Of a stretch of DNA of 64,000 nt, positions 13,084 to 64,000 are shown one piece after another (position 1 is the first letter of the stretch; each line of letters opens with the position of its first letter). The DNA comes from Macrostomum lignano (lineage: Eukaryota). Location: the NCBI GenBank assembly GCA_002269645.1, contig NIVC01000172.1:334558-398557 (forward strand), read 5' to 3'. The notes beneath the pieces are model-generated. The model did no database searches, was not told the origin of the DNA, and was given only the letters and a program-made list of their open reading frames with translations. Made by a program: the position numbers and the translations under genes.

Positions 13084-13099
13084 GTTGGTCTCTGGGGTT

Positions 13100-13535: not shown

Positions 13536-13679
13536 CAGCTCATGATTTCGATTTATGTCTAACGAGAAAAGTGATTTTCGCTTTATCTCTTATGCCTTTA
13601 CAGACTGCCTGTTACTACTTACAACATAACCATGTCAGTAGTATAAACATAATTTCCTTCCCATTAATTCTCCTATCAG

Positions 13680-14500: not shown

Positions 14501-14660
14501 GGTAGGCAGTTAGACAAATCGGCTTTACGAAGAAGCACTATACAATTTTAGTGAGCCAGCACTGCCTTTCTTAAAGTACAAGCAACGTGTGACCCGCAGC
14601 ATTTCGCGCCAGTTCAAATCCAACCCGCTGACCATACTGTGTCCCCCTCCCCGCCCGCAG

Positions 14661-15212
14661 GTGACCTTCCCTCTGCAGTACACGCCGCGCCGCCTGCTGC
14701 TACACGAGAGCGGCCAAGCCGTGCTCATCGAGACTGAGCACAACGCCTTCACTGAGGACAGCAAGCAGCAGAAGAAGCGCCAGATTGCTCAGGAGATGCT
14801 GGAGCAGGCCGGAGCCGACGGTGACCGATCCGGTGACGCCCAGCTGGTCAGGGAGATGGCCGCCGCCTTCCTCAGCGAGAACCTGCCCGAGCCCGTGTTC
14901 GGCGCGCCCAAGCCCGGCGCCGGCATGTGGGCCTCCGTGATCCGCGTGATGCGACCGCTCACTGGCCAGACTGCTCAGATTATCCGGCTGCAGCAGAATG
15001 AAGCTGCGCTCAGCATCTGCCTGTGCCGGTTCGCCTGCAACCCCATGGAATCCTATCTGCTAGTTGGCATTGTCAAGGACATGACCCTGGCGCCCAGGTC
15101 CGTTGGCGGCGCCGTCCTGCGAACCTATCGGGTTGTTGGCGCTCTCGAACGGCTGGACTTTCTGCACGAGACTGCTGTGGAGGACTCGCCTCAGGCTATG
15201 TGCCCCTTTCAG
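14661..15212 (+). CDS. SF3B3: SF3B3 exon 8
   Basis: VTFPLQYTPRRLLLHE...AAAFLSENLPEPVFGAPK...QAMCPFQ; AG/GT boundaries. Confidence 0.97.
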
Positions 15213-19444: not shown

Positions 19445-21342
19445 CTATTCAGGCAGGTGCAGTACAAACTGAATCTGGCCATGCGACTGGGTGTTCTCGC
19501 ATTCGATGGGCTTTCCGCCAAGCAGATCTTGCATGCACCTCTGTACCATGTTAGCCAGCTGACGAAAGTCTTCAATGCTGCTCAAGTTGGTCTGGCGGAT
19601 TCTGGGATAATTGTCGAGAACTCTTCGTAGAGCCTGCAGCATCCACCCACCTGTGTCTGGCCGAGAGTAGGCCATGTGCCCTGGACAGCTGGCGAAAAGC
19701 GCGGAGCAGCCCGGCACAAGACTTGGCAACGAGCTGCCAGCGGTTTCAGCGTCTTCAAAGCTGAAGCCTTCCAGCTGGGTGCTGAGCTCATCAACACTGT
19801 GCCGATAGGTACCTCTGCAAGCCTGATAGAAGACTCTGACGTGGCTGGCAATTTTTTTCAATTTGTTTACCAAGTCCGGAAGTTCAACAACTGTTCCGTC
19901 TGAGAGGACAAAGCCGTCTTGAGATCCATGGGCCGATATGAACAAGTAAATTTTAATATTTGATGACGCATTGGCTGAATGGCGTTTACATGAATCTAAT
20001 ATGGCCTTGATGAAAACTGAATAGGTGCTTTTTAAGATATTATATCCATGCAGCATGTAGATGTTGTTTTTTATGCAGCCAAGCATCTCAGAAATTTTTC
20101 TGCAGTTCTTAAAATCGGCGTCGCAACCAGACCTATCCGGAAGATTACTCGTACTTCCTGAGCTGCTGTAGCTCTGCACAAACACGCCCACCGCTAACAG
20201 AGTGTTCTGTCCGGACTCTGCGCGTACATGTGCCAGCTCAGCGGGTTCCTCACCGACTAGCTGGGGTAAGTCTGTAATTTGTGTTTGTCTGTATCCTTGA
20301 GGATCCAAACCTCTAGGAATTCCAGTTCCCAGCAGAAATTCAAATCCTACAGCTTGCAGCAGGCGCACCATGTTGCTCACTCCATGTTGTTCGGTAATAG
20401 AAGTCACAGCCTGCTTCAAGTAAATATTTAGCAAATCCCAACCGGAAAATTGGGCAGTGAATCTGTAGACCTCAAGGCCACTGAAAGCTGCGCTATGCTG
20501 AATCTGCTGGACCTGCTGCGGTCTGTGAAAAAGGAGGTTATGGCGAAAACTTAGAGTTACCCTACTGATAACCATAATTTCCGCGACTTTTTAACACTTG
20601 GGGAATAGGCAAGACGAACAAGCAGTGCACTACATCTCTACAAATAAATAAAGTGAAAACAAGTTAATCAATTACACACCGGATAAGTGGAAGGCTTGAC
20701 GTGGCCTTTTTGGGGGAAAATTTCCCAATAGACACGCACAGTTGAAATATTGTAACGGAGTTCAGGTCAAGCTGACGATTCCTGGGAATGCAATCGTACA
20801 GGTCGCTTTCACGCACTATGCCGCCAAGAACAGGTCGCCCGTCTGCTGTAACCAACAGAACATGCAGCAGCCACCTGCTGCCAGAATAATAAGCATCATC
20901 CAAGCAGTTCCTGACTGCATTTCGGTAGTCGTCAAGGTTGTCAATCCGAATTGCCCGCAGTCTGACTGACTGCATTGATGGTAAGTTATTCAAGTTTACA
21001 ACTCCCCGGTGCGGGCTCAGAACAAGCAGCCGCAAAGTGATCGTACTGATTGAGGCGGCCTCTGCAGGGGGAACTGAGGCGTCACTTTGCCGTTGCAGGC
21101 CTTGCGGCTCTGAAAGGTTATTCGAGGCAAAGAAAACGCTGAAAACTGCTTTGGCTTGCAAAAAGGAAATCAACTCTTTAGTTGCTGGGCAAAAGTGATG
21201 CGCACAAACCTGAATGATCTGGCAGCGGAGCAACATTGTCCTCTTCGGGATCGGCAGAAACGCTCGAGTTTCTGGTCCTGCCGATTGGTGCTGCAGCTTC
21301 CAGAGGCAAATCTTCTTCGTTGGATTGGTTTGACTTGTCCAT
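19445..21342 (-). CDS. Caspase-family protease (peptidase C14), 3 exons: 21342-21210, 21109-20680, 20522-19445 (about 546 aa)
   Basis: Catalytic motifs ISAHG and YQACRG, plus RSGCDAD. GT/AG junctions give consistent phases (1, then 2) and a total of 1641 nt. A polyA signal lies near 19386 on the minus strand. Confidence 0.85.
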
Positions 21343-30858: not shown

Positions 30859-31758
30859 ATGGCCGACGAAAGCGATCCGCAGCTATCGCAGCAGGCCGCA
30901 GCAGCCGCCGACAACAACCAGGCCCCGGTGCTCAACCCCACTGGGCAGCTACCTGTTCAACATACACCACCGATACTTGAGCCAAGCGTGTCCGCCGTGT
31001 CCGTTAAGGTTCCGCCGCTGTACCGGAACAATTCGGAAGCTTGGTTCCGGACCCTAGAGTCGCAATTCCACCTAGCGCGCATAACTTCGGACGAGACCAA
31101 GTACCACTACTTGGTTGCGCACCTGCCGGAGGATATCTCGTCGATGCTGATCACGACATCAACGCCTCGACAGTACGAGCCGCTTAAAGCCGCCATCTCC
31201 AACCTTCTGCAGAAGAGTCAGCAGGAGAAGATCAACGAGATCCTGGCCACGTCCGATCTAGGTGGCGACAAGCCCTCAATCTTCGTCAAGAAGCTCAGCG
31301 CCAAGATGGCTCAGTGCGGCATGGGCTCCTGCTCCGACATGCTCAAGGCGACTCTCATCCGCTGCCTGCCCAGTGAGCTACGAGTCGCACTATCAGGCTT
31401 CCAGCAGGAATCGCCAGAGAAGCTCGCTGAAATCGCTGATTTCATGGTCAGCTACCAGAGCTCGGCGAGCTCAGTCAGCGCTGTACAGCCGACGCCACCG
31501 CCGACTATCAACTCCAGACGGGACGAACTGCCACGCCGACAACTGCAGCCACAGACAAGCGTCACCCCGTTCAAGCCAGGACAGCGTCCGGTCGTCTGCC
31601 GGGCCCACATCTACTACGGTGAACGCGCGCTTACCTGCCGACCGTGGTGTCGTTTCCCGTCCACCTTGGGTGGTAGGCGGCCGCGAATTCTGAGTACTCA
31701 CGAAAAGACACCTGCACAGTCCAGGTCAGGCTCTCCGACACGTCAGCCGTCAAACTAG
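30859..31758 (+). CDS. gag: Gag of the CsRn1-like element
   Basis: [24 protein letters not shown] capsid-like N-terminus; CHCC-type knuckle [18 protein letters not shown]. Confidence 0.9.
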
Positions 31759-31781
31759 AGGGCACTGCCCAACCTGCCGCA

Positions 31782-34700
31782 GTGAGCAGTGCATCATCCC
31801 CGGCGGCGAGCAAGAAATTCCTGGTGGTGGATATCAAGATAGACAGCAAGTACTACCCGTTCCTGGTCGATACCGGCGCAGCAGTGTCGATAATTCCGCA
31901 GAAGCAATTCCACCGGGACCTTCAGGAGACCGGATTTCGCCTGACCACCGCCACCGGTGCATCGATACCGGTCGCTGGAGAGATCTCGCTCGACGTCAAC
32001 ATCCGAGGACTCCGTCGTGAATTCCGCTGGACGTTCCTGGTCGCATCCGTCGTGCAACCTATCTTGGGGTACGACTTCCTCAGTTATTTCGAATTGATCG
32101 TCGACTGCAAGGGGCGTCGACTAGTTGACCCTACAACGAGACTACATACGCCATCTCTGCCGGTTACCGCAGTGGACCTCGATGAACTCGCCGTGTCGCT
32201 GGCGTATCCAGACCACTGCGATCCTCGTGTACGCGCACTCATCGATCGTTACCGCAGCACCTTCACGTACGTCGAAGGAGGGAGGCTACCTCCGGCCACC
32301 GAAGTTAAACATGACACGAAGCACCACATCATCACGAGCGATAGACCACCGACGCACGCCAAAGCCCGACAGCTGCATCCGGAGAAGCTCGCCATCGCCC
32401 GAGAAGAGTTTCGGCAACTCTTGGAAGCCGGGTACCTCCGGCCGTCGTCGAGCTCTTGGGCATCACCGCTGCACATGGCTCCTAAGAAGGACGATGGCAA
32501 ACCCAATGGTAAGTGGCGACCCTGCGGAGACTATCGACAGCTAAACAAGATCACCCAGCCGGATCATTATCCCGTGCCTCATATCCAGTGTTTCACACGG
32601 TATCTCCACGGTGCCAAGGTTTTCTCCAAGCTGGATCTGGTGCGAGCCTATCATCAAATTCCAATCGCCGAAGAGGACATACCGAAGACAGCAATCATCA
32701 CACCGTTCGGTCTTTACGAGTGGATCCGCATGCCATTTGGTCTTCGTAATGCAGGTCAAACGTTTCAGCGATTCATTGACACTGTGCTCCGTGGCATCGA
32801 CGGCGTGCTCGCCTACGTGGACGACTTGCTAGTCTACTCCAAGGACGAGGAAGACCACCTCCGAGTGCTCGAAAGCGTACTCCGACGCCTTGAACAACAC
32901 GGTTTGAAGGTCCAGCTCACCAAGTGTGCTTTCATGCAGAAGGAAATCACGTTTCTTGGACACCAGGTAACAGCAGACGGGATCCGGCCGCTCGAATCCA
33001 AGGTTGACGCCATCCGCGAGTGGCCGGCACCTCGCAACGCACAGGCCCTGCGCAGGTTCCTCGGCACAATCGGTTTCTACCGCCGCTTCATCCCGCATTT
33101 CAGCCACACCGCTGCACCGCTGCAAGACCTGGTCACCAAGTCACTCAAGGCGCCGCGCACGTACGAGTGGACATCGCAGCACGAGGACGCGTTCAATCAG
33201 CTGAAGGGTAAGCTAGCCGATCGTATCTTGCTTCACCATCCCGACCCGCAGTGTTCGTCCTACAGCCTGGTCACCGATGCCTCGGCAACCTGCGTGGGAG
33301 CCGCTCTACACCAAGCCGACGGTCAGTCGCCAGTCCCGCTCGGGCTGTTCAGCAAGACCCTTTCGCCGACGCAGCGAGCCTACTCTGCTTTCGATCGAGA
33401 ACTCCTAGCAGTCTACCTGGCAGTTCTTCACTTCCGGAGCCTTATCGAGGGCCGTCAGGTCACGATCTTTACGGATCACAAGCCCCTTGTTCAGGCCTTC
33501 CACAGCGGCAGCCAGGGTACCTCCGACAGGAACCAGCGTTATCTGAGCATCATATCCGAATACGTCACCGATGTGGTCTACATCCGCGGCTCTGACAATA
33601 TAGTCGCTGACGCCCTATCAAGGTTATCCGAGTCCGGAGGTTCGCCGACGCAAACGGTTGCAGCCGCAGAGGAGACATCCCTAGAGGAACCCGTCGACTT
33701 GCCAGCCATCGCCGCAGAGCAGAAACGAATCGGGATGCAACCAAGCAACAACTGCCGATTCTATGAGTTCGACGGAAAGCAGGCACTGTTGTGCGATACC
33801 TCCAGTCACTATCCTCGTCCAGTCGTCCCAGATTCGCTACAACAGCCGCTCATTCGGCAGTTCCACCAGCTTGGCCACTACGGCGTCCGCAAGACCGCCA
33901 GCCTGCTGACAACCCGATACTTCTGGCCGAACATGCGAGATGCCATCAAACAGTTCTGTCGAGCATGCGCAACCTGCCAACGAACTAAGATTGGGCGCCA
34001 CACGACGGCCGGCAGTTCTGCGTTCGACCTACCATCGAAACGACTCGAAGTTGTGCACATCGACATCGTCGGTCCGCTGCCTGTACCCGACCGGAAGTAC
34101 GACATCTCCTGCGGTCTCACTCCTCGTTACATACTCACGATGGTCGACCGTAGCACCAGCTGGATCGAGGCCACGCCGCTGGAATCCGTCACCGCAGAGA
34201 GTGTAGCCTCAGCATTCATATCTACCTGGATTTCGCGTTTTGGAGTTCCGCTGTACATCGTCACCGACCGAGGACCGCAGTTCGAAGCCGAGTTTTTCAA
34301 CCGAGTCGCTAAGGACATCGGATTTCACCGACTGCGCACAACAGCATATCACCCGCAGACGAACGGGAAAGTGGAGCGGGCCCACCGCACCCTGAAAGCC
34401 ATTCTGAAGGCTCGCGGGAACTCCTGGCTGGAGAATCTTCCTCTAGCGCTACTTGCGATGCGCATCTCACCAAACGACGACGGCATAAGCCCATTCACTC
34501 GTCTGACCGGAGAACACCCGATGATGCCGCGCGTCCTGACGACAGCCGAGGATCCAACACCCGAGATGATTCGACTGCGCCTGGATAACCTGCTTGACGA
34601 CACGAGACCTCCACCAGATCGGCCTACGCACATCCCGAGCGACCTCGAGACAGCCGAGAAGGTTTGGGTCCGAGTCGACCGAACAAGGAAGCCTTTGGAA

Positions 34701-35105
34701 GCACCGTACCAAGGTCCCTACCCGGTAGTGAAGCGACTGCCGAAGTTTTTCATCATCGAAACAGCCGCAGGACGTCAGGAGTCGGTCTCCATCGACCGCC
34801 TGAAGCCTTGTCGATCAACACCGCAGTCTGCACCTGACAGACGAAGAGCATCTCCGACAGCCGACCCTCCCAACAGCGAGTCGACGGTGCCACAGGAATC
34901 AACATCTCAGTCGGGCACCAGGGAAGACGACATTAGCGACCTTAGCACGACAGCACCGACGGAGGCAGGTTCGCAGCAGACAGAGCCGGAGCGAACCAGG
35001 ACGCGAACCGCGATCCATCAGCAGCAACCACCACCATCACCAGTACGTACCAGGAGCGGCCGTAGAGTGCAATTTAAACCTAAAAATGACTATTTCTACT
35101 TTTGA
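31782..35105 (+). CDS. pol: Pol (PR-RT-RH-IN) of the CsRn1-like element, in the -1 frame relative to gag
   Basis: [10 protein letters not shown] (PR); YVDD (RT); TDAS/DHKPL (RH); HQLGH/CATC zinc motif, [26 protein letters not shown] and PYQGPY (IN). Confidence 0.97.
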
Positions 35106-48783: not shown

Positions 48784-51315
48784 CTCGGCCATCAGATACG
48801 AAGCGAACGAGGTGACCCCCAAACAGACGGCCCGGACGCCCCTTTCGAGATCGACGAGCTCCGCGCCGCTATCCGATGTCTCAAATCAGGGAAGGCTGTG
48901 GGAACCGACGGTGTCTCCAACGAGATGCTTAAACGCCTCCCGCCGGCCGCTGACAAAGCCTTACTCAGCCTCATCAACCGCACCTGGCGGGAGGGCAAAA
49001 CACCGACCAGCTGGCGAATTGGCACCATTATACCGATCCAGAAAAAAGGGAAAGACGCCGCATCACCGGATAACTACCGCCCCGTCGCACTTACCAGCTG
49101 CATCGCCAAGTGCGCGGAGCGCATGGTTCTGGCTCGTCTTAATTATGACCTGGAGAGCCGTGGCGGCCTCACGCCCACTCAAGCTGGTTTTCGTCGCGGT
49201 CGTAGCACCGAGGAACAGCTCGCGCGAGTCTGCCAAGCCATTTTTGACGGCCTCGAGAGTCTACCGGCGCTACGCAGCATCCTCTGCCTCCTCGACTTTT
49301 GCCGAGCGTATGACAGAGTATGGCGCCTGGCCCTGTATGCCAAAATGCACCGCATGGGCATCTCCAAGCGCATCATCCGCTGGATCCGCGGCTTCCTGTC
49401 GGACCGTCACAACGCAGTCCGCTGGGTTAACGCCACGAGCCGCAACAGAGTCTTCCGCGAAGGTCTGCCACAGGGCAGTGTGCTAGCGCCCACGCTGTGG
49501 AATATCTATGTCAACGATTTAGCCCAAGCAGTCGCCGAGGCGAACCCTTTGGTCAGCCTCAGTCTCTACGCCGATGACTCGGCCTTACTGGCGACCGCTC
49601 GCACACTCGACATCTGTGCCAGAGAACTCCAACCAGCCCTGGATGCAGTGGCCGACTGGTGCCGAGATTGGAAAGTCTCCATTAGCACTGGGAAATGCTG
49701 CTACTCCACCTTCACTCTAGCGGCAAATGAAAACAACGGCAAACGGAGAGTGAACCTCCAGATCAACGGCGACAAGCTTGCCTTCGACCCAACACCGACC
49801 TTCCTGGGACTCACTCTTGACGACAGCCTAAGTTTCAGCCACCATGCATCAAAGATCCGTAAAAAGATGGCCGCCCGCAGAAGACCTCTCACTGCCCTCG
49901 CTACCAGATCGGCCGGTGCGGACAGTCAGATCCTCCGCATGGCTTACATCGCCACCGTTCGCTCTGTTGCCGACTACGCGTGCGGGGTCTGGGGGTCTTT
50001 CACTGCAGCCAGCTCTAAGCTGCTGATCGACCGCCAACAGCACAGCTGTGCGCGGATCATCACTGGGTGCCTCCAACTTACTCACATCCGGGACCTGCTT
50101 GCGGTGGCGAACCTGTCGCCCTTCAGCCATCTGGTGCTACAACGTAGTGCGACGCTCAGAGAAAGAATCCTACGTCTCCCGCAGGACACTCCAGCACTTC
50201 AGGTCGCCAAAATGGACACCCGACCACGACTGAAGAATCGAGCCTTTGAGAGCCACCAGAGAACACCGAGAGACCCAAAGGACATCGTCACCGTCCTCCA
50301 CGACTACCAGCGAGAACACCGTGGTTGCTGGCGCCGCGTTAGCCAAGAGCTCGACAGACAGGGGTTGCTCAACGGCCCCACCAGGGAGCCCGCTCCGCAG
50401 CTCCAGCCGCCGTGGACGGCCCACGAAGCGATCACTTTCGACCTCAGTTTGGCTACGCAGTGCAGCCGCAGCCAGCCCCAGAGCCTCCGCAGCGATACTG
50501 CACTGAGGTACCTCGAGGAGCGCGGCTCCCACCCGGTCAGTGTTTGGACTGACGGCTCGGCCGCCGGCGGCACATCGGACGGCACCAGCGCAGCGGTGAT
50601 CATCACCCCATGCTGGGGTCGGGTCGTCACCAGCGCTGCAGGGAACATCTGCAGCAGCACCCAGGCGGAACTCCAAGCCATACTGCTTGCCATCCAGAAT
50701 ACCAGAGAGCATCAATGTATCGACATCTTCACTGACTCCCAGGCGGCCATTTACAACATCATGGCGGGCCAGCGCAGCAACAGCAGAATCGTCTCCGAAA
50801 TTTGGAACCAGAGTAGCGATCACTCCATCCGCATCACCTGGATACCGGCTCACTGCGGCATCCCCATGAACGAACGCGCAGATAGGGCGGCAAGACTGGC
50901 GACCGCTGATCAGAGCGACCATGGTGTCCCCATCATGGCAGCCAGCGCTTACCTCTGCCGGGAAAGACGTGATCTAGACCTCGAGCTTTGGGGCCGTAAG
51001 GCGCCATGGCCAAGACTCCCAACCTTGCCGAGGAAATTTGAGGTCCTGGTCAACCAGCTCCGCGCCGGCTGCAGCAACCTTGCCGCCGCCACTAGACTCC
51101 GACTCGGCCTGTCCGACTCCGACGTGTGCCCGGACTGCGGAGCTCGCGACACCGAGCAGCACATTCTTTTCGACTGCCCACGAGGGTTCGCGGCCCGCCC
51201 CGGCGAACAAGACGCACTCCTGGTTGACGCGAGCCTCACCATCAACCTTCTTCGCAGGCTGGGGCGCATATAGCGCCCCCGTCTCTTGCAGCCCAGCTGA
51301 CATCGAGACGTGCGG

Positions 51316-51351: not shown

Positions 51352-51582
51352 AGCAGCAGCCGCTATCCGTGCCGGCAGTCAGTTAATTGATGAGTTTTCT
51401 GGCAGAGCTGGTTATTTTTTAAGTTTCTGAATCGAGAAGCCGATTAACTGTTGTGTGCTTCACTGGAATATTATTAAGAGGACGCATTTTTTTTGCAGTC
51501 TGTGTCTAATAAAATCCGGTGCAATGACCGCGGTAGAGCTCTAGCATTTGCTTTTTATAGTATTTGTGTATATTCTTTTTCA

Positions 51583-51992
51583 AGCTATGCTGGAATTGTT
51601 GGGACAGCCCCATCCACACTGGCTATGGTGGAATTGTTGGGACAGCCCTATCCACACTGGCTATGCTGGAATTGTTGGGACAGCCCTATCCACACTGGCT
51701 ATGCTGGAATTGTTGGGACAGCCCTATCCACACTGGCTATGGTGGAATTGTTGGGACAGCCCTATCCACACTGGCTATGCTGGAATTGTTGGGACAGCCC
51801 TATCCACACTGGCTTTGCTGGAATTGTTGGGACAGCCCCATCCACACTGGCTATGGTGGAATTGTTGGGACAGCCCTATCCACACTGGCTATGCTGGAAT
51901 TGTTGGGACAGCCCTATCCACACTGGCTATGCTGGAATTGTTGGGACAGCCCTATCCACACTGGCTATGCTGGAATTGTTGGGACAGCCCCA
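51583..51992. repeat. 38-bp minisatellite (gctatgctggaattgttgggacagccctatccacactg)
   Basis: About 10.5 copies; the ORFs here are artefacts. Confidence 0.95.
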
Positions 51993-52649
51993 TACTATAG
52001 TGTGTGCTGGCTTCTGCTATAGTGTGGTTCATTTCCGCATCCTTTTACGTAGCATTCTGTGGGTCCGAATAGCTGACATGTACCTTTTGAGTAATTCTAG
52101 TGATTGTGTCATAATCAATAAAGTACATTTTTATGAACAGTGGAGTTTCGCTACAGAATTGTTTTTTCCCAGTGGCACTAAATGTAGCAAATTTTGTTTA
52201 TTCAGATCGTAAAATTTTTTTGATATGTGTCAATGTCGTTTGTTTTCGATAACCTTAAAGTCCCTTGCCATTTACCATCCTGTCTTCTATAATCTATGTT
52301 CGCTGAAATTATCTGGTGAAATTTGACGCGCTGATATTATTGCCTTAAGTGGAATTCAGCAAGACACCAGGGTTTTTTAATTCTGTTTTAGACAAGTATA
52401 CATGTACAATCTGTTGTGAGTTCAATGCACCTCGAAAAATGCTTTCCAACTGTTTTCAGTAAGCCAAAAGCATGTTGTCAATAAAAATCGATTTGGTGGG
52501 TTGAAAATTGCCTGTGTGGGGACGTGTGTGTGTGTGATTTTTCGTGTGTCGGAGCAGTCCCAATATGTGCAAGCTTTTGCACACTTGGCCAATAAGTGCC
52601 TCGTGCACGTTTGTGTGACTATAAAAAGTACTCTCGATGCTGGCAGACA

Positions 52650-54510: not shown

Positions 54511-54512
54511 AA

Positions 54513-57342
54513 TGAAGTGATACATTTTGACTCAAGAAAGTTCCCATCCAGATTGAATGTATCTTAACCAATGAATGCGCTCCAAATAGCAAAAGCTGAG
54601 GACACGACCCCAACCTCAACCAATGAAAAACAGTTATGTACCATCCAATGCGATCAAGACTGAAAAGTACTATAAAAGCTCATGTTAACCAAGCAAGAAG
54701 CTCGCCCCCTTTCTCGCTCCGCCTCTCCTCCCCTTTTCTCTCCTTCGCCCTTCTCCCAGCCTACCTCCTTTTGACTAATTTTGATTAACATAGTTAGGGT
54801 CTCAACCCAAACACCAAAACTGATAAATTGACTTACTAAAGCTAAACCAACACCCAATCCACGTTTTACAATAGACTGAACCTTCGGTTCACCCGAACAA
54901 CTAGAAACACCTTGTGACTTAAATCGAACGAGCTTCTTATTTGGAATTCCACCTTAGACATTATATTTTTGTGAGAAAACGTCTCGAGATTGTGACCATC
55001 AAATACAACGGTCTGTAAGTTACCATCAAGTGTTTGCATCATCAGGAAAAGTCAGTTGAATCCGCCGCCTCAGTTATTTGGCTCTCACATTGATATTTGA
55101 AGTAGACATAGAGCCATAGAAGTGAGAGACCAGAAGAAGAACAGTAACATATATTTTAAAATATTTCACTGGTTCCCTGACCGTACTTTTCCTCCGATGC
55201 GTCTCACCACAATAGCCGCTATGCCCTGCATGGGGTAGACAGCTATAGGCGTGGCTGATGGGTGTGAACGGTTGGACTGGCTTCCCCCCCCCCTCCCCTT
55301 TGAGCATTCGAGACTGTCAGTAATACATATTCGAAGAATGAATCGTAAATCACGAGCTCTTAAATTCAAATTCAGAATTCAAATCGGTTCTAAGTTTTGT
55401 CCAGTGCACTGAGACCTGATTCAAGTTTTTTTCAGATTCAAAGGATCCATGAAAGTCAATAAATTATCGTTCCGGAACAATTTCAATTTCACTTCAATTC
55501 AAGAAACGTCGTCGAACGTCTGACATCGAGTTCTTATTCTCAAGCCTCAGAGCTTCAATGCAGAAATTCAATTCAGTTATTCGGATCCTCAATTGTTCAA
55601 GCTTCAAAGCTTCGATTTTTCAAAGACCGCGGCATCATCAATTGTTCAAGTTTATTTAATGTTGGACGCCTCTTTCTTCACTGCCTTTCCGTAGAATAGC
55701 AAAGTCTACTCTGGATTTCCTCAAGTAAACTTGAAACTCTCCAAAGTGACTGAGCCATTCGTTTCCTCCTCGGTTTTTCCCAGTGTGTGGCCACATCTAG
55801 AAAACTGGCTTATCTCAGATTCTCTGCGCCGTTAAGCGCCCGAAAGAAAGAACGAAAACGCAAAAAACCTGACGAGCTATTCCAACAAAGTCACTACAGT
55901 AAACATCAATCAAAATCTGGAACCACCAATTTCTTGCTGTCAGAAAACTTTTTCGCTTATCAGACAGGTTGCTTGTCTAACCATTCATTATCTTCCTTGA
56001 TTAAAGCCCAAGATTCGCTGTCTGCCAAGCCTGCGTGCTTCATCTGGAAAACCTTGCTTATTTTCGTAGACCGCTTGCCTAGCCTTCCATCACTTTTTCT
56101 TGATTAAACAATCCAAACTCACTGTTTGCAAAGCCCACGAGCCCCATCCATCAAATCCTCATTGACCCAAGTTTGTTTTTTCGGATTGCTGATTCTGGCG
56201 GTTGCCCTTTATAGATCATTTTGATGTAGAGATTAGGATGCTAGGGAATTTTCTTGTGTGTTTATTCAGCTTCAGTGCCCTCCAACAAATCCTTATCTTA
56301 AACAAGCTGCCCAAGTCAGACTTCGCGCGCATACTTAATCTCCCAGAGAGACCTCCTTTCTTAATTAAAGCCATCAATCAACTTCATTTCCCACGAGAAA
56401 ATCTTTTCCTTAATCAAACTGTCCAGGCCAGCCTTATCCTGCCACTTCATCACCGGCCCAGCGATGTTTTTTCTGCAATCACTGACAACCGACCTCCCCT
56501 GGGATCTGTCCCTAGCTCCCTCCCGTTTCGCATGATGGATTAAGACCAAAATAACCTCAACTTTTCTCCCATCCCTCTACTGCCAGTGGCGCGAGCTTTT
56601 TGGTAACCCCATATCCCCTTCGCTTATGACAAACTCAAAATGATCATTAGATCGCAAAAAATAATAAAATTTGAAAACACAAAAAAACAATACCATTGCT
56701 TATAGTTCATCTCGTATAATCCGTACTGCTCTTATCATGTTAAATTTGAAAAATGATCAATCCGATCAATGAAAAATTATAAAATTTTCAAAAAATTAAA
56801 AATAGCAAATTTATAAAACTACAAAAACATTACTCTACGTTTGCTTAAAATTATGAAATCAACCCCCTAGCTGAAACTCGTCAGATAGTTCAAAATTCAA
56901 ATTCGAAATTCAAAAAGCCAGAACAAATTCTCAGAAGAAAACTGCCGACTTCAAGAAAAAGAAAACTGCCGATTTCAATGATACAAATTCGATTTTATTG
57001 GCCACCACTGATGTCCGTCTAGTCCAACATTCAGGAGCTCCTTTATCAAATTCAGTTTTCATTAAAGTTTCAGAACCGATCAAAACGGCAGTTCAATTCA
57101 AAATTTCAGAGTTCAAAATTTCAAAATTCAAAGTTTCAGAACCGATCAAAAGGCAGTTCAATTCAAAATTACTTCGATTTTCAAAGCTCGTCGCAGATCA
57201 CAGTTAAAAAATTACACAGTCTCTCTTTTTCTCCCTTCCCCAGCCAGTCCGCCAACCGCAACCCTGAAAGCCATTGCCGTTTGCTCACTTTGAATTTGAC
57301 ACTCTACTTTGCTATTAGTTACATTTTTGTGCTATTGTTGCC
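54513..57342 (+). mobile_element. Probable 5' LTR and leader of the env-bearing Gypsy-like element (boundaries uncertain)
   Basis: Similarity to the host repeat stops at about 54512, followed by TG; 2.8 kb of non-coding sequence then precedes gag. There is no second LTR in the window and no PBS was confidently identified. Confidence 0.45.
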
Positions 57343-57867
57343 TTGAAATTATTGATTGAATTCTTGTTAATGACCACACCTGTCCGAGATTTACGTTCCG
57401 GACCAGTTTTTCAAAGCTCAAATATTAACAGACCCCCTGAACAAAATTTAGAAACTTCTGACCGCCAAATAGGTGAACAGCTCCCACGAAATAGTTCACC
57501 AGTACCTAACCTGTTTATACCAGATAACGTTGAGTTTAATAACCCTCTCGCGGATCATTTTGAATACAACCGTGCACACTCACCAGCACCCAGTTCCATC
57601 CTAACAGACGCGGACGAAACAGTTCAACCAGCCCCAAACGATATTGCTGAAGAATCTACTCTAGATATGGCTGATCAGGACGGCGCTCCCCATGTTGATG
57701 CTGCAGCGACAAATGCTGTCCGTGAACTTACTGATGTTATGAACCGCAGTCTGCAATTGCAATCAAACCATCCCGTCTCAGCTACTGCTCTTGCTGAAAT
57801 TCGTCAATCCCTGAAAGGAATCGACCAAATGCATGACTTCGCTCCTTCACTGAAGAGTTCGACTTGA
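57343..57867 (+). CDS. gag: Gag N-terminal segment (frameshifted into the next ORF)
   Basis: Starts with an RDLRSG-type motif; continues via a one-base shift near 57845 into FTEEFDLITRSFGL. Confidence 0.65.
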   Translation: MKLLIEFLLMTTPVRDLRSGPVFQSSNINRPPEQNLETSDRQIGEQLPRNSSPVPNLFIPDNVEFNNPLADHFEYNRAHSPAPSSILTDADETVQPAPNDIAEESTLDMADQDGAPHVDAAATNAVRELTDVMNRSLQLQSNHPVSATALAEIRQSLKGIDQMHDFAPSLKSST

Positions 57868-60146
57868 TCACACGCTCCTTTGGACTATCGGAGAACGCAA
57901 AGATTCGGCTCTTCCCGCGACTACTGAATGACCTTCTTAAACTCGAATACAGTCGCCTCTCTGCCGCAGTCCAAGCCTCTTATCCAGCCACCATTGAGGC
58001 ACTGTCTCAACGCCTTCGGGAAGTAACCATTGGCTCGGCTCTAACGCTGCATAATGCAACAACCCGGAAACAACAGTACGGCGAACCGTTCCTGTCTTAT
58101 TTCACCGATATTCGTCGAAAGCTCAGGTCAGCTATGCCGGAAATACCGGAAGAATTTCCGGAAGGTGCCGGTCCGGAAACACCACCCGCGAACCAAGCTG
58201 TCATCGACCAGCGCAACCGAGACTTCCTTGCTACCCTGATGGCTACGACTATCAACAATGCTCTACCCTACATCAAACGAGAACTCTTGAAGCAAAATAT
58301 CACCACGGAAAGTACGCTAATCAACAAGGCCATCCGCGCCGAACAAATCCGCGACTCCACCATGGACTCTGATGGCACTGACTTGAAAGCTCTCACAGAG
58401 CGTCTAACTACCTTAGAAAAAACGACGAAGGAAGCCAATCAGCAGGTGGTTGCCTCCCTGCAAACACAAACCAAGCCACCTATCGCTAATATGCAACAGA
58501 AGCCCACTTGTTATCATTGCGGCCGACCTGGACATTATGCCGCCGATTGTCGTCGAAGGAATGACCAACAACCTCGTCCCTTCCGACCTAACTCTGGCGA
58601 TCGAAGAACCGCAGCTCACTATGGCTCGGACGCCCCGCGAAATCGTTACCAGCAGGGACCGCCACGATTGACCTGTAACTATTGCCGAAAACCAGGACAC
58701 TCTATTAACCAGTGCCGACTACGAGCCCAACGTACACAAGGCTACGGTCCACCGGCGACACAACAATCACGATTTCCACCCCGTCAAGACTATGGAAACC
58801 GGCCTCAGCAACGCTATCCGCCTCGATACAACGGCGCCAACAATCAACGACAACCTCCGAGATTTGCGCAACAACAATATCCACCGATACGCGCCATCAC
58901 TGCTCAGGACCCTGAAACGTCCCACCCAGGATGGAATCAACAGCCGCAGATTGGATGGACGACTCACGACGCTCCCGAGTCTGCCCAACTGATGCACATT
59001 GCTACAGTTGATGAACGCCCACCGACTTTTGGAAACGAAATTCGCTACTCTGGAGACGCTAAGCAGCTGAAATCCTTACTCAAAAAACCGACTACTGCTT
59101 CTGCGACTATCAACTCTATCCGCCTTTGTACGGTTGAAAGAATGACTGACACCTACACTCCACCGACCAGCAACAACAACCGCGAGAAAACCGTGAAAGC
59201 TTCCGTCGGAATTCGCCGATCACTACTGACACTTTTTCTCCTGTGCCTAGCAACTTCACTCTTCGCACTAGCCAACGCTACGCCGGTAACGACGTCAACT
59301 CCACCATCGATTGAGAGACAATCTCACGAGGGCTTCATTGACACACCAATGGTCTGTCCGTACAACCAGATCCCACGAATTTTCACGATACCACATGAGA
59401 TCCGTTGCGAACAGCTCAAACACCAAACAACGCCGACACTCCCGTTGAAACTGGAACTTTACACAACAAACGTAGAAACCAGTTCCCTGGTTATGACTGT
59501 CTGTTTCCGCGAGAAAATCACTATTAGATGTGATAAGGCGGTGATAAGAACCTGGACATCCGCCCTGGTAGAGTTGGAACCGCAACCAGTCACTCAAGCT
59601 GATTGTGAAAACTGGGCACGAACAAAGCTATCGCCTGATGGATCATTAGTGTTAAAGACTGCGTCAACTCAGTCTATCCAACGCCTGCAATCGACATTCA
59701 ACACGCAAAATGCTGTGCGTTGCACTCCCGGTTCCCATTCAGAACAAATAGTAACAACAGTGATCACCGGAATCCCAGCCTACTCAACAGCAGATCAAAA
59801 AATGGAATCTTTGTCCTTCCCAATGGACAACTGCAAACTCGCCGACAAATTTTGTACAATTAAAACAACTGCACAAGAAATGCGAGCTTTCAACCTACCT
59901 TTGCCGATACTAACATCCCCCTGGGATCCTTTGGAAACTGAAGCAATCTACCAAATTGACGTGAAAGGACCAAGACATCTAAATCTTATTTGGACACCTC
60001 CACCGCTCGCTGATTGTCCTTTAAAACCATTTCGTACTCTTGAAGGTAACTTAAACTCCGGCTTGTTCTTAACTAATGACAAACATTGGACTAACCTTCA
60101 ACCCAGTGCCGTCGACTCACACTCTCACCTGCACTGGCGTCCGTAA
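57864..60146 (+). CDS. Gag (capsid-like plus two CCHC knuckles) fused in frame to a signal-like hydrophobic segment and a Cys-rich glycoprotein ectodomain
   Basis: CYHCGRPGHYAADC (58509) and CNYCRKPGHSINQC (58674); RRSLLTLFLLCLATSLFALANA (59214-59279); then VC..., C.REKITIRC, VTQADC, C..C and LIW, with no stop in between. Confidence 0.85.
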   Translation: MITRSFGLSENAKIRLFPRLLNDLLKLEYSRLSAAVQASYPATIEALSQRLREVTIGSALTLHNATTRKQQYGEPFLSYFTDIRRKLRSAMPEIPEEFPEGAGPETPPANQAVIDQRNRDFLATLMATTINNALPYIKRELLKQNITTESTLINKAIRAEQIRDSTMDSDGTDLKALTERLTTLEKTTKEANQQVVASLQTQTKPPIANMQQKPTCYHCGRPGHYAADCRRRNDQQPRPFRPNSGDRRTAAHYGSDAPRNRYQQGPPRLTCNYCRKPGHSINQCRLRAQRTQGYGPPATQQSRFPPRQDYGNRPQQRYPPRYNGANNQRQPPRFAQQQYPPIRAITAQDPETSHPGWNQQPQIGWTTHDAPESAQLMHIATVDERPPTFGNEIRYSGDAKQLKSLLKKPTTASATINSIRLCTVERMTDTYTPPTSNNNREKTVKASVGIRRSLLTLFLLCLATSLFALANATPVTTSTPPSIERQSHEGFIDTPMVCPYNQIPRIFTIPHEIRCEQLKHQTTPTLPLKLELYTTNVETSSLVMTVCFREKITIRCDKAVIRTWTSALVELEPQPVTQADCENWARTKLSPDGSLVLKTASTQSIQRLQSTFNTQNAVRCTPGSHSEQIVTTVITGIPAYSTADQKMESLSFPMDNCKLADKFCTIKTTAQEMRAFNLPLPILTSPWDPLETEAIYQIDVKGPRHLNLIWTPPPLADCPLKPFRTLEGNLNSGLFLTNDKHWTNLQPSAVDSHSHLHWRP

Positions 60147-61893
60147 GACGTTGTACCTTTCAACACAAGGTCTATACGTAGACATCCTCGACAACAAAGA
60201 AGCAGAATTTCTCGCCACCTTACGAAGCCCATTAGAAGAAGCTACTCCAAAACCTCAAACTAGCGAAGAAACCACTTCTTCGAGACAAAAACGTCGTTCA
60301 CCACCAACGATACTACCAACGCCACCAACAATATTACCCGTTCAGCAATCGACGACTCAACATCCTTTCACTACGACAACTCAGTCACGACAATTCCTAC
60401 CGCCGCAACCTTTACGACAAGAGCGACCTGATCATCCACCGACGTCAAGCACTTCTACAACAATGACGCCAACAACTACGATACTAACTACTACAAAATC
60501 AACACCAACAACTACAATTTTGACAACGACAACACCACCGAGTACAACGACAACACCACCGACTACAACGACAACACCACCGACTACAACAACAACACCA
60601 CCGACTACAACGACAACACCACCGACTACAACGACAACACCACCGACTACAACGACAACACCACCGACTACAACGACAACACCACCGACTACAATGACAA
60701 CACCACCAGCTACGACGACAATGCCAGCGACTACAACGACAACAATACCTACCACAACCGTAACACCGACAACTTCAACAACCACAACTGCTACAACCTC
60801 AGCAGCAACAACGACAGCAGGTCAACTACGACGACAACAAAAGTGACGACACAACCTCGTACCACCACCACTTTACCGCCAACAACCTCAACCTCTAGCA
60901 GCACAACCAGTGCACCAGCAAAGTCTGCAACCTCAACCTTCACACAACTCACCAGCGACAACAACAATCCACAACTGGCTTCTATTCATACGAATCTAGC
61001 AGTTCCATCACGAACCACAAGGTAGTCAACCGGATCTCCTACTACTACCACGCAACAAGCGAAGCACAGATGACAAAACCATCGCAGCCCCTTCAGGCAA
61101 CTCTACTGCGCAACTTTCATCAACGTTCGCATCCGCTGAACTTCTTGCTGGACAACTACAAGGAGCTGCTAGTAAAGCTCGAAAAGATCTTCTCCAAGTA
61201 CAGAGGCAGCTGCAACTACTCAATGCATGATGTACGCAACTAATCTCAAGTACAATCGACAGTTATACTACACACAACCAACGCTCGCTGCTCGACTCTT
61301 ATTAAATGATCCTTTCTTGCGAGCTAGATCCATTGCTGGATACCTCTTCGTCTACCAGTGCAAACCCCTACATCAGTTCGCTTTGTCCAACCAAAGTACA
61401 AGACGAACCAATGCTTCACGCGCCCCCACTGGAATTCCGCCTACAAAATTATACTGTTCTTGGATTTTTGGACACAACGACTCGTATTGTCTCCACAGCT
61501 ACTCCAGCTCTAATCTCATGCGACGCCTTCCCATACTACTACCTGCCTAAACAATCGATGCTATTCAAGACCACACTAAATTTTTCGAGATTTGAACCCA
61601 CAACCGCTAATGTCAGATCCGATGAAAACTATCGGTTGTCCGATTTGCAAACTTCCGTCTCCGAGAGCATCTTCAAACCTATGGGAGACATCAATTATAC
61701 TTCACTTCGTAGCCCAATAACGGTGACCGACCTAATGCACCAGTTCATGCAAACTCGCGATTTTCTGATTACAGTTTTCAAACTTCCGAATCGAACACGA
61801 CACAGAACAGCACATGCTGACAGTGCATTCCTGGACTCAAAACTAGCTCTCTCAATCTATGGTCTTCGTCGATATTCAACTGGGATCGACTAG
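60076..61893 (+). pseudogene. Central env-like region broken by several frameshifts: mucin-like Thr/Pro tract, furin sites and a class III-like helix
   Basis: IGLTF...C...STQG; RQKR (60283); (TTTPP)n; RNKR (61051); LAGQLQ; TQPTLAARLLLNDPFLRARSIAGYLFVYQC; TNQCFTRP; ISCDAFPYYYL. Confidence 0.75.
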
Positions 61894-64000
61894 TCGCAAA
61901 CTATCAAGAAAAGTTCGTCTTAACAGCAGCTGTAATCGTCTACATTGCCGTTATTATCTTCGTGTGCAATCTTGGCCGACTCTGCGTCGCCAGCACCATC
62001 CGTTACGGCAGAACGCACACTATACAAGTGCTGCGGCAACAACGAACTCCAACTCGAGTGGAATCACGAAACGACTACTCCCAACAACAGCAACTGATAC
62101 CACCGAGACAAGCGCCAACACCTTCGGCACCCATCGAAACGATTGAACTTCGCGCCACCCTTCCGCCACCACGGAGACCACCACCAGAACCGAAAGTTCC
62201 AAAATGGCCAGCAAACTACTCATACGCCTTTGTTTTGAAGCACCTAACAACAGCAACAATGATCAACCTGTGGTGCCGCAACGCACCGCATACTCGACAC
62301 AGATGCACCGCCCTCATTGACAGCGGCGCCTCGATCTCCTGCATCTCACCGGCATTCGCCAAAAAGCTTCGAGTACCATTACAAGACACCAACATGAACG
62401 CCATTTGTGCAGGAGGACAACAACTAAACCTCAACAAAAAGGCTACTTTTGATCTCGAAATCGATGGACGCAACCACAAGATATCGGCCTTTGTGCTCGA
62501 CACCCCCGACGCTGACTATGATTTGCTCTTAGGAGTAGAAACCTTTAAGTCACTGGGAATACCACTACAATTCGACTACTCGAAAGCGACAGCTAAGCTT
62601 GGCAATGAGCAATTTGCGATGCTCAACTCCATCCAACAGTTGCAAGAAACCTCTGCGGTGATGCAAAACAAGCTAGAGTTACCACCACAGACAACGCACC
62701 AAGTCACGCTGAAACTCTCTTCTCGACATGAGCCAACGATTCCTGTCCTGTTCGTCCCTAAGGACCACACGATCCAGAAACACCAGTTGATGATACCAAC
62801 TTGCCTTGTTTCTGTCAACCCGGACGGACAAACTATCACTGTGGAAATTGCCAACCCGTCGCTGACAACGCAAACCTTGCATCCTCAACAAGTCATTGGA
62901 AATCTGGCTAACATGTCTGACTACAACATCGTGCGCCCAGCAGCTCAAATCAACAGTCTCCGCACGCTGCAACAAGAAGCACCTACGACTGACATGATCC
63001 GTACTCAACTCAAACAAGCCAACCAGCACCTCTCAACCGAGCAGAGTGAACAATTAGTTACTCTAATGAACAAGTACCGTGACGTCTTGGCACTACTGCC
63101 AACCGACATGGGTTGCTCTACCCAATACACGGCTCACCTGCATCTACACCCACACTCTGAGCCAGTCACGTCCAGACCCTATCCAATCGCTCATGGACTA
63201 CAAGAACGGTTTGATGAGCTCATCGAAAACTTCCGTCAAAAAGGAATCATCAGTCCGAGTGAATCGGAATACTCAAGTCCATGTCTTCTCGTGGAAAAGA
63301 AGACGCTCGACGCTCAAGGTCGCCGACAACTAAGACTCGTGACGGATTACCGAAAACTGAACAAGCTAATTCGTGCTCCTAGCATCCGACCTCCGAAGAT
63401 TCCGGATTTGCTACATCGATTGAAGAACGCTAAACTGTACACACTCTGTGACCTAGCAGATGCTTTCTACCAAGTTCGGATCGATCCAGAAAGCACAAAA
63501 TACACTGCGTTCATTGCACCCAACGGCCTACTTTGGGAATTCAATCGACTACCTCAAGGACTCAAGTCCAGTCCTAGCTTAATGTGCCGTCTTGTAGCAT
63601 TGTTAACAGCTGACTCTCCAAATCAGATTGCCTACTTGGATGACGTCATGCTCATCGCCGAAGACTTCACCGGCATGCTCAAAGAAATCGAACGCTTCTT
63701 CCAAAAGTTACGACATCATGGATTGCGAATTTCACTACGAAAATGCATCTTTGCTAAAACAGAGGTACAATATCTTGGATTTGTTGTTTCTGCTCAAGGC
63801 ATTAGACCAGCCCCAGCCTTATCGAGAAAATCAAACCTTTCCTGTGCCTCAACGGTTAAACAACTACAATCTTTCCTTGGACTTGCAAATTTCTACCGAA
63901 CGCACATTGCTGGCTACTCACGAGTAGTACAGCCACTTCTGAGTATTATCAAAAATACTTCAAAACCCAACAAATTCGTCTGGACGAACGCTGCGCAAAC
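61821..64000 (+). CDS. pol: Env TM helix, aspartic protease and RT in one open frame, running off the window edge
   Basis: Manual translation shows no stop: FVLTAAVIVYIAVIIFVC (61914-61967); ALIDSGASIS (62319); DLLLG; RPYPI; SPCLLVEKK; RLVTDYRKLN; FYQV; LPQGLKSSP; YLDD (63633); YLGF; SFLGLANFYR. Not in the ORF track because no stop lies inside the window. Confidence 0.92.

Follow-up and report, generated by a model that had tools for sequence, protein, structure and literature searches.

LTR retroelements outside the Ty3/gypsy superfamily can bear class III fusogens: Tas of Ascaris, a BEL/Pao element, reportedly has a gB-like env (Malik et al. 2000), and mosquito BEL/Pao elements are said to carry a chuvirus-like G (Dezordi et al. 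2020, bioRxiv 10.1101/2020.02.15.950899). In BEL/Pao elements of this sort, env reportedly lies after pol. Closer to the locus described here are Ty3/gypsy 'errantiviruses' with a GAG-ENV-POL layout and an ENV of the HSV/gB type, found in Platyhelminthes, Nematoda and Bryozoa (Chary and Hayashi, eLife 2026, PMC13524379). For non-canonical endogenous retroviruses of nematodes, a captured RNA-virus glycoprotein has reportedly been proposed (Sacco et al. 2022, J Gen Virol, 10.1099/jgv.0.001739, as cited in PMC13524379).

We analysed a 64,000-nt stretch of the Macrostomum lignano genome (the window; contig NIVC01000172.1), in which an earlier note had flagged an env-like gene. The flagged stretch is very probably the env of an approximately 14.8-kb Ty3/gypsy LTR retroelement, and its product a class III fusogen of the gB / Monjiviricetes-G type. 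Because a GAG-ENV-POL layout with a gB-type ENV has been published (Chary and Hayashi 2026, PMC13524379), the element belongs to a kind already known from Platyhelminthes. It shares with those elements a Ty3/gypsy pol, LTRs, a primer-binding site, env between gag and pol, an ectodomain preceded by a signal peptide (or first TM) and followed by a TM, a gB-like fold, an optional furin site, conserved cysteines and the host phylum. Unlike the main-text description in that paper, gag, env and pol of the M. lignano element share one frame, and a mucin-like linker of ~250 aa separates domains II and III. The nematode elements of Sacco et al., as cited in PMC13524379, likewise have a metavirus backbone, env before pol and a glycoprotein said to be RNA-virus-related, but their host phylum differs. 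With Tas and the mosquito elements the common ground is an LTR retroelement bearing a class III fusogen, in a different retroelement superfamily.

The element reads LTR, primer-binding site, leader, gag, env, PR-RT-RH-IN, an uncharacterised 3′ region and LTR (Table 1); of the two LTRs, the window itself contains the 5′ one only. Window positions 54511-55168, the LTR plus two 5′ bases, are 99.85% identical over 658 nt to the 3′-terminal positions 13077-13734 of genomic copy L002, and 95% identical to positions 14531-15190 of copy L001. By direct reading, a purine-rich tract precedes the 3′ LTR copy, and TTAA stands on both flanks of the element, provided that the window and L002 represent the same insertion. 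The locus thus presents the TG...CA LTRs, primer-binding site, polypurine tract and, under that same proviso, target-site duplication of an LTR element. A tRNA gene was not found in the 64-kb window. The leader ORF has no Pfam match, and the leader of L001 is diverged, with an extra stretch of ~2.1 kb. In L001, gag is uninterrupted. RNase H and integrase follow RT in copies L001 and L002, whose pol products are P0001 and P0002, respectively; P0002 contains the Pfam domains RVT_1, RT_RNaseH, Integrase_H2C2 and rve. Across the window ORF, P0001 and P0002, the PR-RT-RNase H-IN order with an rve integrase and H2C2 zinc domain is that of Ty3/gypsy. M. lignano proteins match the pol product of the window at 97-98% identity.

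Table 1. Features of the retroelement in the window (positions of the 64,000-nt stretch).
Feature	Position	Strand	Basis
5′ LTR, TG...CA ends	54513..55168	+	matches 3′ end of copies L002 and L001
Primer-binding-site-like TGGTTCCCTGACCGTAC	55170..55186	+	one base past LTR, starts TGG; direct reading
Long leader, primer-binding site to gag, with short 15-nt tandem repeat	55187..57369	+	common to L002
gag, two CCHC zinc knuckles (58509-58535, 58674-58700)	57370..59213	+	Pfam zf-CCHC, E 2.3e-8
env-like gene, signal peptide to end of anchor	59214..61988	+	homology to P0024, P0025, P0027
Internal signal-peptide-like RRSLLTLFLLCLATSLFALANA (RR, hydrophobic core, ANA)	59214..59279	+	hydropathy peak 2.11
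Ectodomain N-half, equivalent of gB domains I-II	59280..60279	+	alignments A2, A10; paralogue model
VCFREKITIRC	59499-59531	+	
VTQADCENW	59589-59615	+	
NCKLADKFC	59829-59855	+	
LIW	within 59982-60002	+	
GLTF...C	from 60088	+	
Thr/Pro/Ser-rich mucin-like linker, begins at dibasic RQKRRS	60280..61050	+	composition
Furin-like site RNKR, just ahead of central helix	61051..61062	+	sequence reading
Homologue of gB central helix (domain III) and start of domain IV; PTLAAR...YQC, CFTRP	61144..61632	+	profile A9
LAGQLQ	61144-61161	+	
PTLAARLLLNDPFLRARSIAGYLFVYQC	61278-61361	+	
CFTRP	61412-61426	+	
Membrane anchor VLTAAVIVYIAVIIFVCNLGRLCV	61917-61988	+	hydropathy peak 2.73; conserved in P0024, P0033
Pro/Gln-rich tail, anchor to protease, same open frame	61989..62297	+	open-frame reading
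Aspartic protease, ALIDSGAS 62310-62333	62298..62549	+	Pfam gag-asp_proteas E 9.7e-8, Asp_protease_2 E 1.6e-7
Reverse transcriptase, YLDDV 63633-63647, cut by window end	63300..64000	+	Pfam RVT_1, E 6e-24

The env region is real coding sequence rather than a chance reading, since its N-terminal 310 aa match an M. lignano protein (E 1.1e-49) and two further genomic copies are 97-98% identical to the window. All of the env motifs named in the earlier note occur in translations of the + strand, and the C-terminal TM that it described is the hydrophobic anchor. The end coordinate that it gave for the gene (61967) falls inside that segment. Position 59214 codes for the first residue of the signal-peptide-like stretch, which is in frame with gag without an intervening stop, as it is in P0024, P0025 and P0027. 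By Kyte-Doolittle analysis of P0024 and of the window frames that hold them, this stretch and the anchor are the only strongly hydrophobic segments, one on either side of the ectodomain. From N- to C-terminus, the Env of this element consists of a signal peptide, the Cys-rich N-half, a linker of mucin-like Thr/Pro composition, the furin-like site, the central helix with the crown region, and the anchor. Seven cysteines of the N-half are invariant across four families. The linker contains a 21-nt tandem repeat (60523-60758, about 11 copies) and is rich in Ser, Thr and Pro (fraction 0.72 in window 60280-60843, and 0.57 for the linker of P0024); the L003 family lacks it. Counterparts of the RNKR site are RIRR in P0024 and RRRR in P0033, a protein 28% identical to P0024.

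In class III proteins, the equivalent of gB domains I-II carries internal fusion loops. The fold of this half was modelled on the natural intact paralogue P0024, whose N-half is 38% identical to that of the window (E 1e-49), by AlphaFold followed by Foldseek, one of the checks that the earlier note had proposed for its class III assignment. The model was built from a four-sequence alignment and half of it is of low confidence (mean pLDDT 57; 121 residues at pLDDT ≥70). In the PDB search, herpesvirus gB fills ranks 1-28 (E from 2.5e-5 to 6e-3, with probabilities of up to 1.00); Mokola, rabies and VSV G come next, and then GP64. TM-scores are low, at 0.23-0.37. In BFVD, the matches are to nyavirus, chuvirus and rhabdovirus G, gB and some entomopoxvirus proteins; at E ≤1e-3, the named matches comprise Monjiviricetes glycoproteins, gB and three uncharacterised entomopoxvirus proteins, and several further matches are nameless. 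The domain I beta-sandwich of class III proteins is present on this model with moderate confidence. Aromatic residues sit in a candidate loop of the alignment. The N-half sequence profile found no relative in the PDB. A model of the whole ectodomain (pLDDT 39) gave nothing significant in its Foldseek search; at that low confidence, it places a long helix directly after the cleavage site.

The C-half was compared by profile. Profile A9 combines three families and includes the window fragments with the PTLAAR...C block. Against 177,635 PDB sequences, it matched gB chains only (n = 8, E 2.5e-5 to 1.5e-3). A9 positions 46-209 (164 positions) align to residues 444-611 of EBV gB (E 2.5e-5), with all four cysteines and the NPT, QC and CY.(R/S)P motifs in register, and hhalign against four gB segments gave P 5.8e-4. 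The central helix (domain III) and crown with conserved cysteines of a class III fusogen are thus recognisable in A9. Only two viral Pfam families appeared, Monjiviricetes_fusion (PF24664; E 6e-4 and 18.3 bits for P0024, E 6e-5 and 21.6 bits for P0033) and Glycoprotein_B (PF00606; E 0.012 and 15.5 bits for P0024), all below the gathering cut-offs of 27 and 43 bits, respectively. The PF24664 matches of P0024 and P0033 lie at equivalent profile positions (313-421 of 653), and the two families match one shared stretch, the region flagged in the earlier note. PF00606 gave no match for the window pieces. Judged from its Pfam scores, the env is a remote homologue of gB and not a member of Pfam PF00606.

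Compared with herpesvirus gB (EBV 7fbi/3fvc, KSHV 8y48/9cu4, HSV-1 2gum), the M. lignano Env thus resembles it in N-half fold (Foldseek probability up to 1.00), in profile homology that runs from the central helix into the strands after it and brings the cysteines into register, in a protease site in the linker ahead of the central helix, and in a single C-terminal anchor. In contrast, identity in the structural alignments is ~10%, the Pfam gB cut-off is not reached, and the Env lies inside a retroelement polyprotein frame and has a long mucin-like insertion. Herpesvirus gB works with gH/gL, partners of which none was noticed in the element.

Three independent lines, the N-half fold, the C-half profile and Pfam, side with the class III claim of the earlier note, and against class I or the baculovirus F type. 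A hydropathy scan revealed no hydrophobic peptide after the furin-like site: the 20 residues beyond it are hydrophilic (mean hydropathy −0.61 in the window; −0.4 and −0.6 across the sites tested), which excludes a class I layout. No class I match was obtained in Pfam, the PDB profile search or Foldseek. A class II fusogen of the phlebovirus Gc type, as in nematode Cer and Atlas, also had no match in the Pfam, PDB and Foldseek results. Could the gene encode something other than a viral-type class III fusogen, namely a class I or II envelope, a host mucin or surface glycoprotein, or a chance viral fragment within a gypsy element? No curated family was matched above threshold, and the long Thr/Pro-rich repeat looks like cellular mucins. 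However, the mucin-like part is a linker only and is missing from the L003 family, the structural and profile matches that reach significance are all to class III fusogens, no hydrophobic peptide follows the cleavage site, and four families whose env N-halves share just 24-40% identity keep gag and env in the same order and in one frame. This possibility is highly improbable and is already contradicted.

Within class III, the env might be closer to the Monjiviricetes glycoproteins (nyami-, chu- and rhabdo-like) than to gB and have been captured from such a virus, a reading that we regard as plausible without favouring it. Among Pfam families, PF24664 scores best with two independent members, P0024 and P0033 (E 6e-4 and 6e-5, against 0.012 for gB), and in BFVD, where matches reach E 1e-6, a nyavirus glycoprotein (E 1.1e-6) ranks ahead of the best gB (E 1.2e-5). 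In the PDB, by contrast, the scores of gB are two to three orders of magnitude better than those of rhabdovirus G, and the sequence profile matches gB only, though the PDB appears to be without a nyami- or chuvirus G, since none surfaced in any search here. These score differences are small and say nothing on the direction of transfer. The Env also departs from the Monjiviricetes family in its sub-threshold scores (18.3 and 21.6 bits against 27) and in its carrier, a DNA-integrating retroelement rather than an RNA virus genome. The earlier note had gone further and implied capture from a negative-strand RNA virus or herpes-like donor; nothing here shows such a capture, and Chary and Hayashi favour an association of ancient date over a recent capture (PMC13524379).

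The open frames extend well beyond env. P0024 is encoded by an uninterrupted 8559-nt ORF (2852 aa) that holds gag, env and pol in one frame, with only two hydrophobic segments in its 2852 aa, and full-length gene models of its family number at least four. In L001, the frame stays open across gag and most of env; in the window, it is open from within env (at the anchor) through protease into RT, up to the window end. The L003 family has the same gag-env-pol frame apart from one in-frame stop, and in P0027 gag also runs into env. Four families thus have no stop between gag and env, and pol continues the same frame in all three families where that part is seen. This arrangement suggests that gag, env and pol may be made as one membrane-threaded polyprotein. 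The alternative is expression of env from a spliced mRNA; as there is no stop from gag to the signal peptide and none from the anchor to the protease, a single ER-threaded polyprotein appears most likely.

In such a polyprotein, the Gag part would remain in the cytosol, and the ectodomain would be directed into the ER lumen by the internal signal peptide; at the anchor the chain would cross back, leaving PR-RT-IN on the cytosolic side. Cleavage would fall to signal peptidase, a furin-like protease and the protease of the element. The glycoprotein would form trimers and fuse membranes, allowing spread from cell to cell or by an extracellular route. The proposed chain, crossing the membrane twice, is reminiscent of the expression strategy of flaviviruses. 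We found no description of a membrane-threaded gag-env-pol polyprotein for a retroelement; the main text of PMC13524379 mentions neither such a polyprotein or shared frame nor a mucin.

The window copy itself, as assembled, cannot encode an Env protein. Its motifs lie in different frames, so the env is frameshifted as assembled, in agreement with the earlier note. Against the other copies, the window env has nine private frameshifting indels (eight of 1 nt and one of 2 nt, net −6) and two in-frame indels besides, with no substitution stop in 666 checkable codons. One frameshift lies inside gag and a second private 1-nt indel ~515 nt upstream, in the gene or the leader; gag has no substitution stops. 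Beyond the anchor (62010 to the window end), three closely spaced private 1-nt deletions (net −3) keep the frame open. The P0024 family has the unbroken gag, env and pol ORFs that Chary and Hayashi take as the mark of an intact element; the window copy does not.

Taken at face value, these breaks would make the window copy a dead relic, with real frameshift mutations and pseudogenes for env and gag. That L001 and L002 also carry private indels, and that just three of the 14 window indels adjoin a homopolymer run, fits this view; the intact 8.5-kb ORF kept by another family indicates that the assembly is not uniformly error-ridden. The pattern of change, however, argues otherwise. Real divergence is expected to bring several substitutions per indel, whereas the alignment of the window with L002 has 58 gap openings and 61 mismatches (~1:1). 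Between the paired LTRs of the intact L004 copy there are three gaps but not one substitution, which points to indel errors in this assembly. Between copies, env pN/pS is 0.11-0.20 with no nonsense substitutions, which shows that env in this lineage was kept under purifying selection. Neutral decay long enough for nine frameshifts should have left relaxed pN/pS and nonsense changes, yet selection is strong and about 650 codons per region hold no nonsense change. For these reasons many of the breaks may be assembly errors, and we consider a dead relic unlikely.

We raise, tentatively, a broader possibility: that gag, a class III fusogen and Pol form one polyprotein crossing the ER membrane twice, in an envelope-dependent, retrovirus-like agent that is spreading now. 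If so, the purifying selection on env, together with the intact 8.5-kb ORFs and substitution-free LTRs of the sister family, would point to an agent currently spreading in M. lignano, a laboratory flatworm with stem-cell-based regeneration.

Three-frame translation of window 56-64 kb (+) places the parts of a retroelement in order along this strand, and their positions are collected in the table. Every motif quoted in the earlier note is present at its position in this translation, and the motifs sit in different frames, as that note had said. Macrostomum lignano proteins share 97-98% identity with the pol product, and two further copies in GCA_002269645.1 (L001, NIVC01001182.1; L002, NIVC01003266.1) are 97-98% identical to the window across the whole element. 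In both copies pol also encodes RNase H and then an rve integrase carrying an H2C2 zinc domain, the order of Ty3/gypsy elements. The LTRs did not show in a gap-free repeat search; BLAST with the window upstream region revealed them, with window 54511-55168 corresponding to the last 658 nt of the L002 element (99.85% identity). A TGG-initiated, primer-binding-site-like sequence begins one base past the LTR, a purine-rich tract stands ahead of the 3′ LTR copy, and TTAA is found on both outer sides. The element measures about 14.8 kb, including a 2.2 kb leader and about 2.8 kb between the integrase and the 3′ LTR.

Parts of the env-carrying retroelement in the window
Feature	Position	Strand	Basis or character
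LTR proper, TG...CA	54513-55168	+	match to L002
gag	upstream of env	+	two CCHC zinc knuckles
Signal-peptide-like stretch	starts exactly 59214	+	translation
env ectodomain	after signal-peptide-like stretch	+	cysteine-rich
Thr/Pro-rich repeat	after cysteine-rich ectodomain	+	translation
Furin-like motif RNKR	after Thr/Pro-rich repeat	+	translation
Block PTLAARLLLNDPFLRARSIAGYLFVYQC, then CFTRP	3′ of RNKR	+	translation
env membrane anchor	61917-61988	+	strongly hydrophobic
Aspartic protease, then reverse transcriptase running off window end	3′ of anchor	+	same open frame as anchor

The stretch from integrase to 3′ LTR (L002 10303-13077; L001 11983-13463) holds an ORF of 330-360 aa common to both copies, which has no Pfam match and may be an accessory gene. 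About 2.1 kb of the L001 leader (480-2584) is absent from the window and L002, and the leader upstream of it is only 78% identical to theirs; the extra sequence could be a nested insertion or a product of recombination between subfamilies.

Searches of Pfam and PDB sequences with the window env pieces and the long L001 ORF returned nothing relevant, and a word-indexed protein search queried with the window N-half and the four-family alignment found no env relatives. Homologues came only from an exhaustive HMMER search, in which the uninterrupted N-terminal 310 aa identified four proteins (P0024, P0025, P0026, and P0027); scans of viral and metagenome contigs gave no further relatives or no usable pattern. 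P0024 (M. lignano BOX15_Mlig009479g2; E 1.1e-49, 39% identity to these 310 aa) is a single ORF of 2852 aa comprising gag, signal peptide, ectodomain, anchor, protease (PR), reverse transcriptase (RT), RNase H, and integrase, and its 90% cluster contains at least four full-length gene models. The P0024 gene forms one unbroken 8559-nt stretch in its locus, L004. The two LTRs of this copy (683-1257 and 13473-14049), aligned over 578 nt, show three gaps and not a single substitution, which points to a very young insertion. A tandem array with a 60-nt period adjoins the 3′ LTR of this locus.

P0025 comes from a 9-kb contig (JAZBNS010000450.1, GCA_036350755.1) that was deposited as part of a MAG assigned to a Kangiellaceae bacterium. 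This contig is plainly a eukaryotic gag-env-pol retroelement, and is mis-binned. The neighbouring gene, P0033, carries env and pol on in the same frame past one in-frame stop, which lies inside env, and the env of this P0025/P0033 family is without the mucin-like linker. A short Logan contig supplies P0027, a gag-env fragment, and P0026 is a chimeric M. lignano gene model of 3187 aa that includes an internally deleted copy of the window's family. The element part of P0026 is fused to the laminin-type EGF repeats of a host gene. The four families (the window's own and those of P0024, P0025/P0033, and P0027), with env N-halves 24-40% identical and seven cysteines invariant across them, place gag before env, and three of the four continue into pol.

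The earlier note had likened this env to the class III viral fusogens. The claim was tested without repairing frames: the intact paralogue and the fragments, all natural sequences, each entered the alignments as a row of its own; two short window fragments that would not align correctly were left out. The C-half of P0024 matches just two Pfam families, Monjiviricetes_fusion (PF24664, E 6e-4) and herpesvirus Glycoprotein_B (PF00606, E 0.012), both on the stretch flagged by the note, and P0033, which is 28% identical, independently matches PF24664 at the same profile positions (E 6e-5). All Pfam matches fall below the curated cut-offs and so indicate remote homology, not family membership. Against PDB, a profile of P0024 and the window fragments gave one marginal match, KSHV gB (E 0.05), while with P0033 added the sole matches were eight herpesvirus gB chains (E 2.5e-5 to 1.5e-3, 164 positions). 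This three-family profile and gB align at the helix cysteine, at NPT, QC, and CY.(R/S)P, and at the cysteine that comes next. Comparison with four gammaherpesvirus gB segments by hhalign gave P 5.8e-4, at a probability of just 29%.

For the N-half, a sequence profile found no relative in PDB. An AlphaFold model of the whole P0024 ectodomain, built from a seven-row alignment, had a pLDDT of 39 and no significant Foldseek match, and was treated as uninformative. The N-half model, built from P0024 with the four-family alignment, has 121 residues at a pLDDT of at least 70. Its PDB matches at ranks 1-28 are all gB, from eight herpesviruses and with probability up to 1.00, followed by Mokola, rabies, and VSV G, with GP64 later. 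In the structure database BFVD, the matches that have names are gB, glycoproteins of the nyavirus, chuvirus, and rhabdo-like kinds, and a few entomopoxvirus proteins that are uncharacterised. TM-scores are low, the targets being large and half of the model lacking structure; the argument lies in how uniform the match lists are. The entomopoxvirus proteins Q9YVZ3, W6JPK9, and Q9EME2 are among the best BFVD matches (best E 2.5e-7), which suggests that entomopoxviruses may have class III fusogen-like proteins.

Because the two halves agree by different methods, with gB-only PDB profile matches for the C-half and class III-type Foldseek matches to the predicted fold of the N-half, the class III reading is supported. 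As candidates for the nearest viral relative, gB and Monjiviricetes G are not separated by the scores, nor do the scores establish the capture from an RNA-virus or herpes-like donor that the earlier note inferred. Past the furin-like site the first 20 residues are hydrophilic, so there is no class I fusion peptide; a class I envelope protein was rejected, and the earlier note was right to set the retroviral class I type aside. A class II envelope protein, a host mucin, and a viral fragment nested in the element by chance were also rejected, as was a domesticated host gene, the sequence being multi-copy, LTR-flanked, and in frame with gag and pol. A class III fusogen can be picked out from raw sequence.

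From gag to the signal peptide there is no stop in the window, L001, P0024, P0025, or P0027, and none from anchor to protease in the window and P0024. P0024 reads gag-env-pol as one frame, the gag-env stop is absent in four divergent families, and the P0025/P0033 family keeps the same frame throughout except for its one stop. Exactly two hydrophobic segments occur in the 2852 aa of P0024, on either side of the ectodomain. While env could alternatively be expressed from a spliced message, we infer a single polyprotein that passes through the ER membrane so that Gag and Pol are cytosolic and the ectodomain lies in the lumen. This polyprotein would be cut by signal peptidase (at an ANA motif in the window), a furin-like protease, and the element's own protease. 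The mucin-like linker would sit between domains II and III, where gB instead has a disordered, protease-cleaved loop; its absence from the P0025/P0033 family marks it as an accessory feature. If the single frame does yield a polyprotein, this would be an unusual mode of envelope expression among retroelements, and the layout would bear on how their gene order came to be swapped.

Indels were counted from a three-way comparison of the window, L001, and L002. In the window, gag has one frameshift inside the gene and another private 1-nt indel about 515 nt upstream, unplaced with respect to the start codon; env carries two in-frame indels and nine private ones that shift the frame, of which eight are 1 nt long and one is 2 nt; and the post-anchor part (tail, PR, RT) has three closely spaced 1-nt deletions, -3 in total, after which the frame is still open. 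Private indels are also found in L001 and L002. Between copies, pN/pS is 0.11-0.20 for env, 0.21-0.32 for gag, and 0.05-0.08 for PR-RT, and by this measure env is under strong purifying selection. Nonsense substitutions are absent from about 650 codons per region, the env check covering the signal peptide through the central helix. That the window indels are real mutations would fit with the small number located in homopolymers and with the intact P0024 copy in the same assembly. We nevertheless doubt that most of them are real, since 58 gap openings stand against 61 mismatches between the window and L002, substitutions are strongly constrained, and nonsense changes are lacking, whereas neutral decay giving nine frameshifts should leave relaxed substitutions and stops. 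That the L004 LTRs differ by gaps alone hints that indel errors occur in this assembly.

Chary and Hayashi (eLife 2026, PMC13524379) describe Ty3/gypsy elements of Nematoda, Bryozoa, and Platyhelminthes as carrying only HSV/gB-type ENV in the order GAG-ENV-POL, with a predicted structure of five domains that resembles gB and a variably conserved furin site; for the nematode elements they cite Sacco et al. 2022. In host phylum, backbone, order of genes, and type of envelope the window element matches this description, and it therefore belongs to the published kind. The biology of the class is thus already published, and the present finding adds one host and family. Beyond the published account are the strong purifying selection on env, the stop-free gag-env junction in four families together with the single gag-env-pol frame of P0024, and the mucin-like linker. 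The main text of PMC13524379 has no wording for a polyprotein in a single frame or for a mucin-like linker, and on this absence is based the novel reading of Gag, fusogen, and Pol made as one polyprotein, to which we give a modest probability. A retroelement carrying a gB-type envelope is now placed in M. lignano. This flatworm has an active piRNA system and is a tractable model for work on regeneration and the germline.

The window holds a second, unrelated Ty3/gypsy element (30859-35105, +), in which a DUF7041 gag-like ORF directly precedes a 1107-aa PR-RT-RNase H-IN ORF; env is absent between the two. At 48898-51273 (+), a GC-rich island (0.54-0.57) covers a 791-aa ORF of a non-LTR retrotransposon that has RVT_1 and RNase_H domains. 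Two ORFs, one with a caspase domain (19445-20572, -; Peptidase_C14, E 3.7e-11) and one matching the first beta-propeller of RSE1/DDB1/CPSF1 (10309-11277, +; E 2.8e-28), are probably host gene exons. A tandem repeat at 51493-52212 (+) is open in all three forward frames, with units of about 37 aa (AGIVGTALSTLAMLELLGQPYPHWLCWNCWDSPIHTGY).
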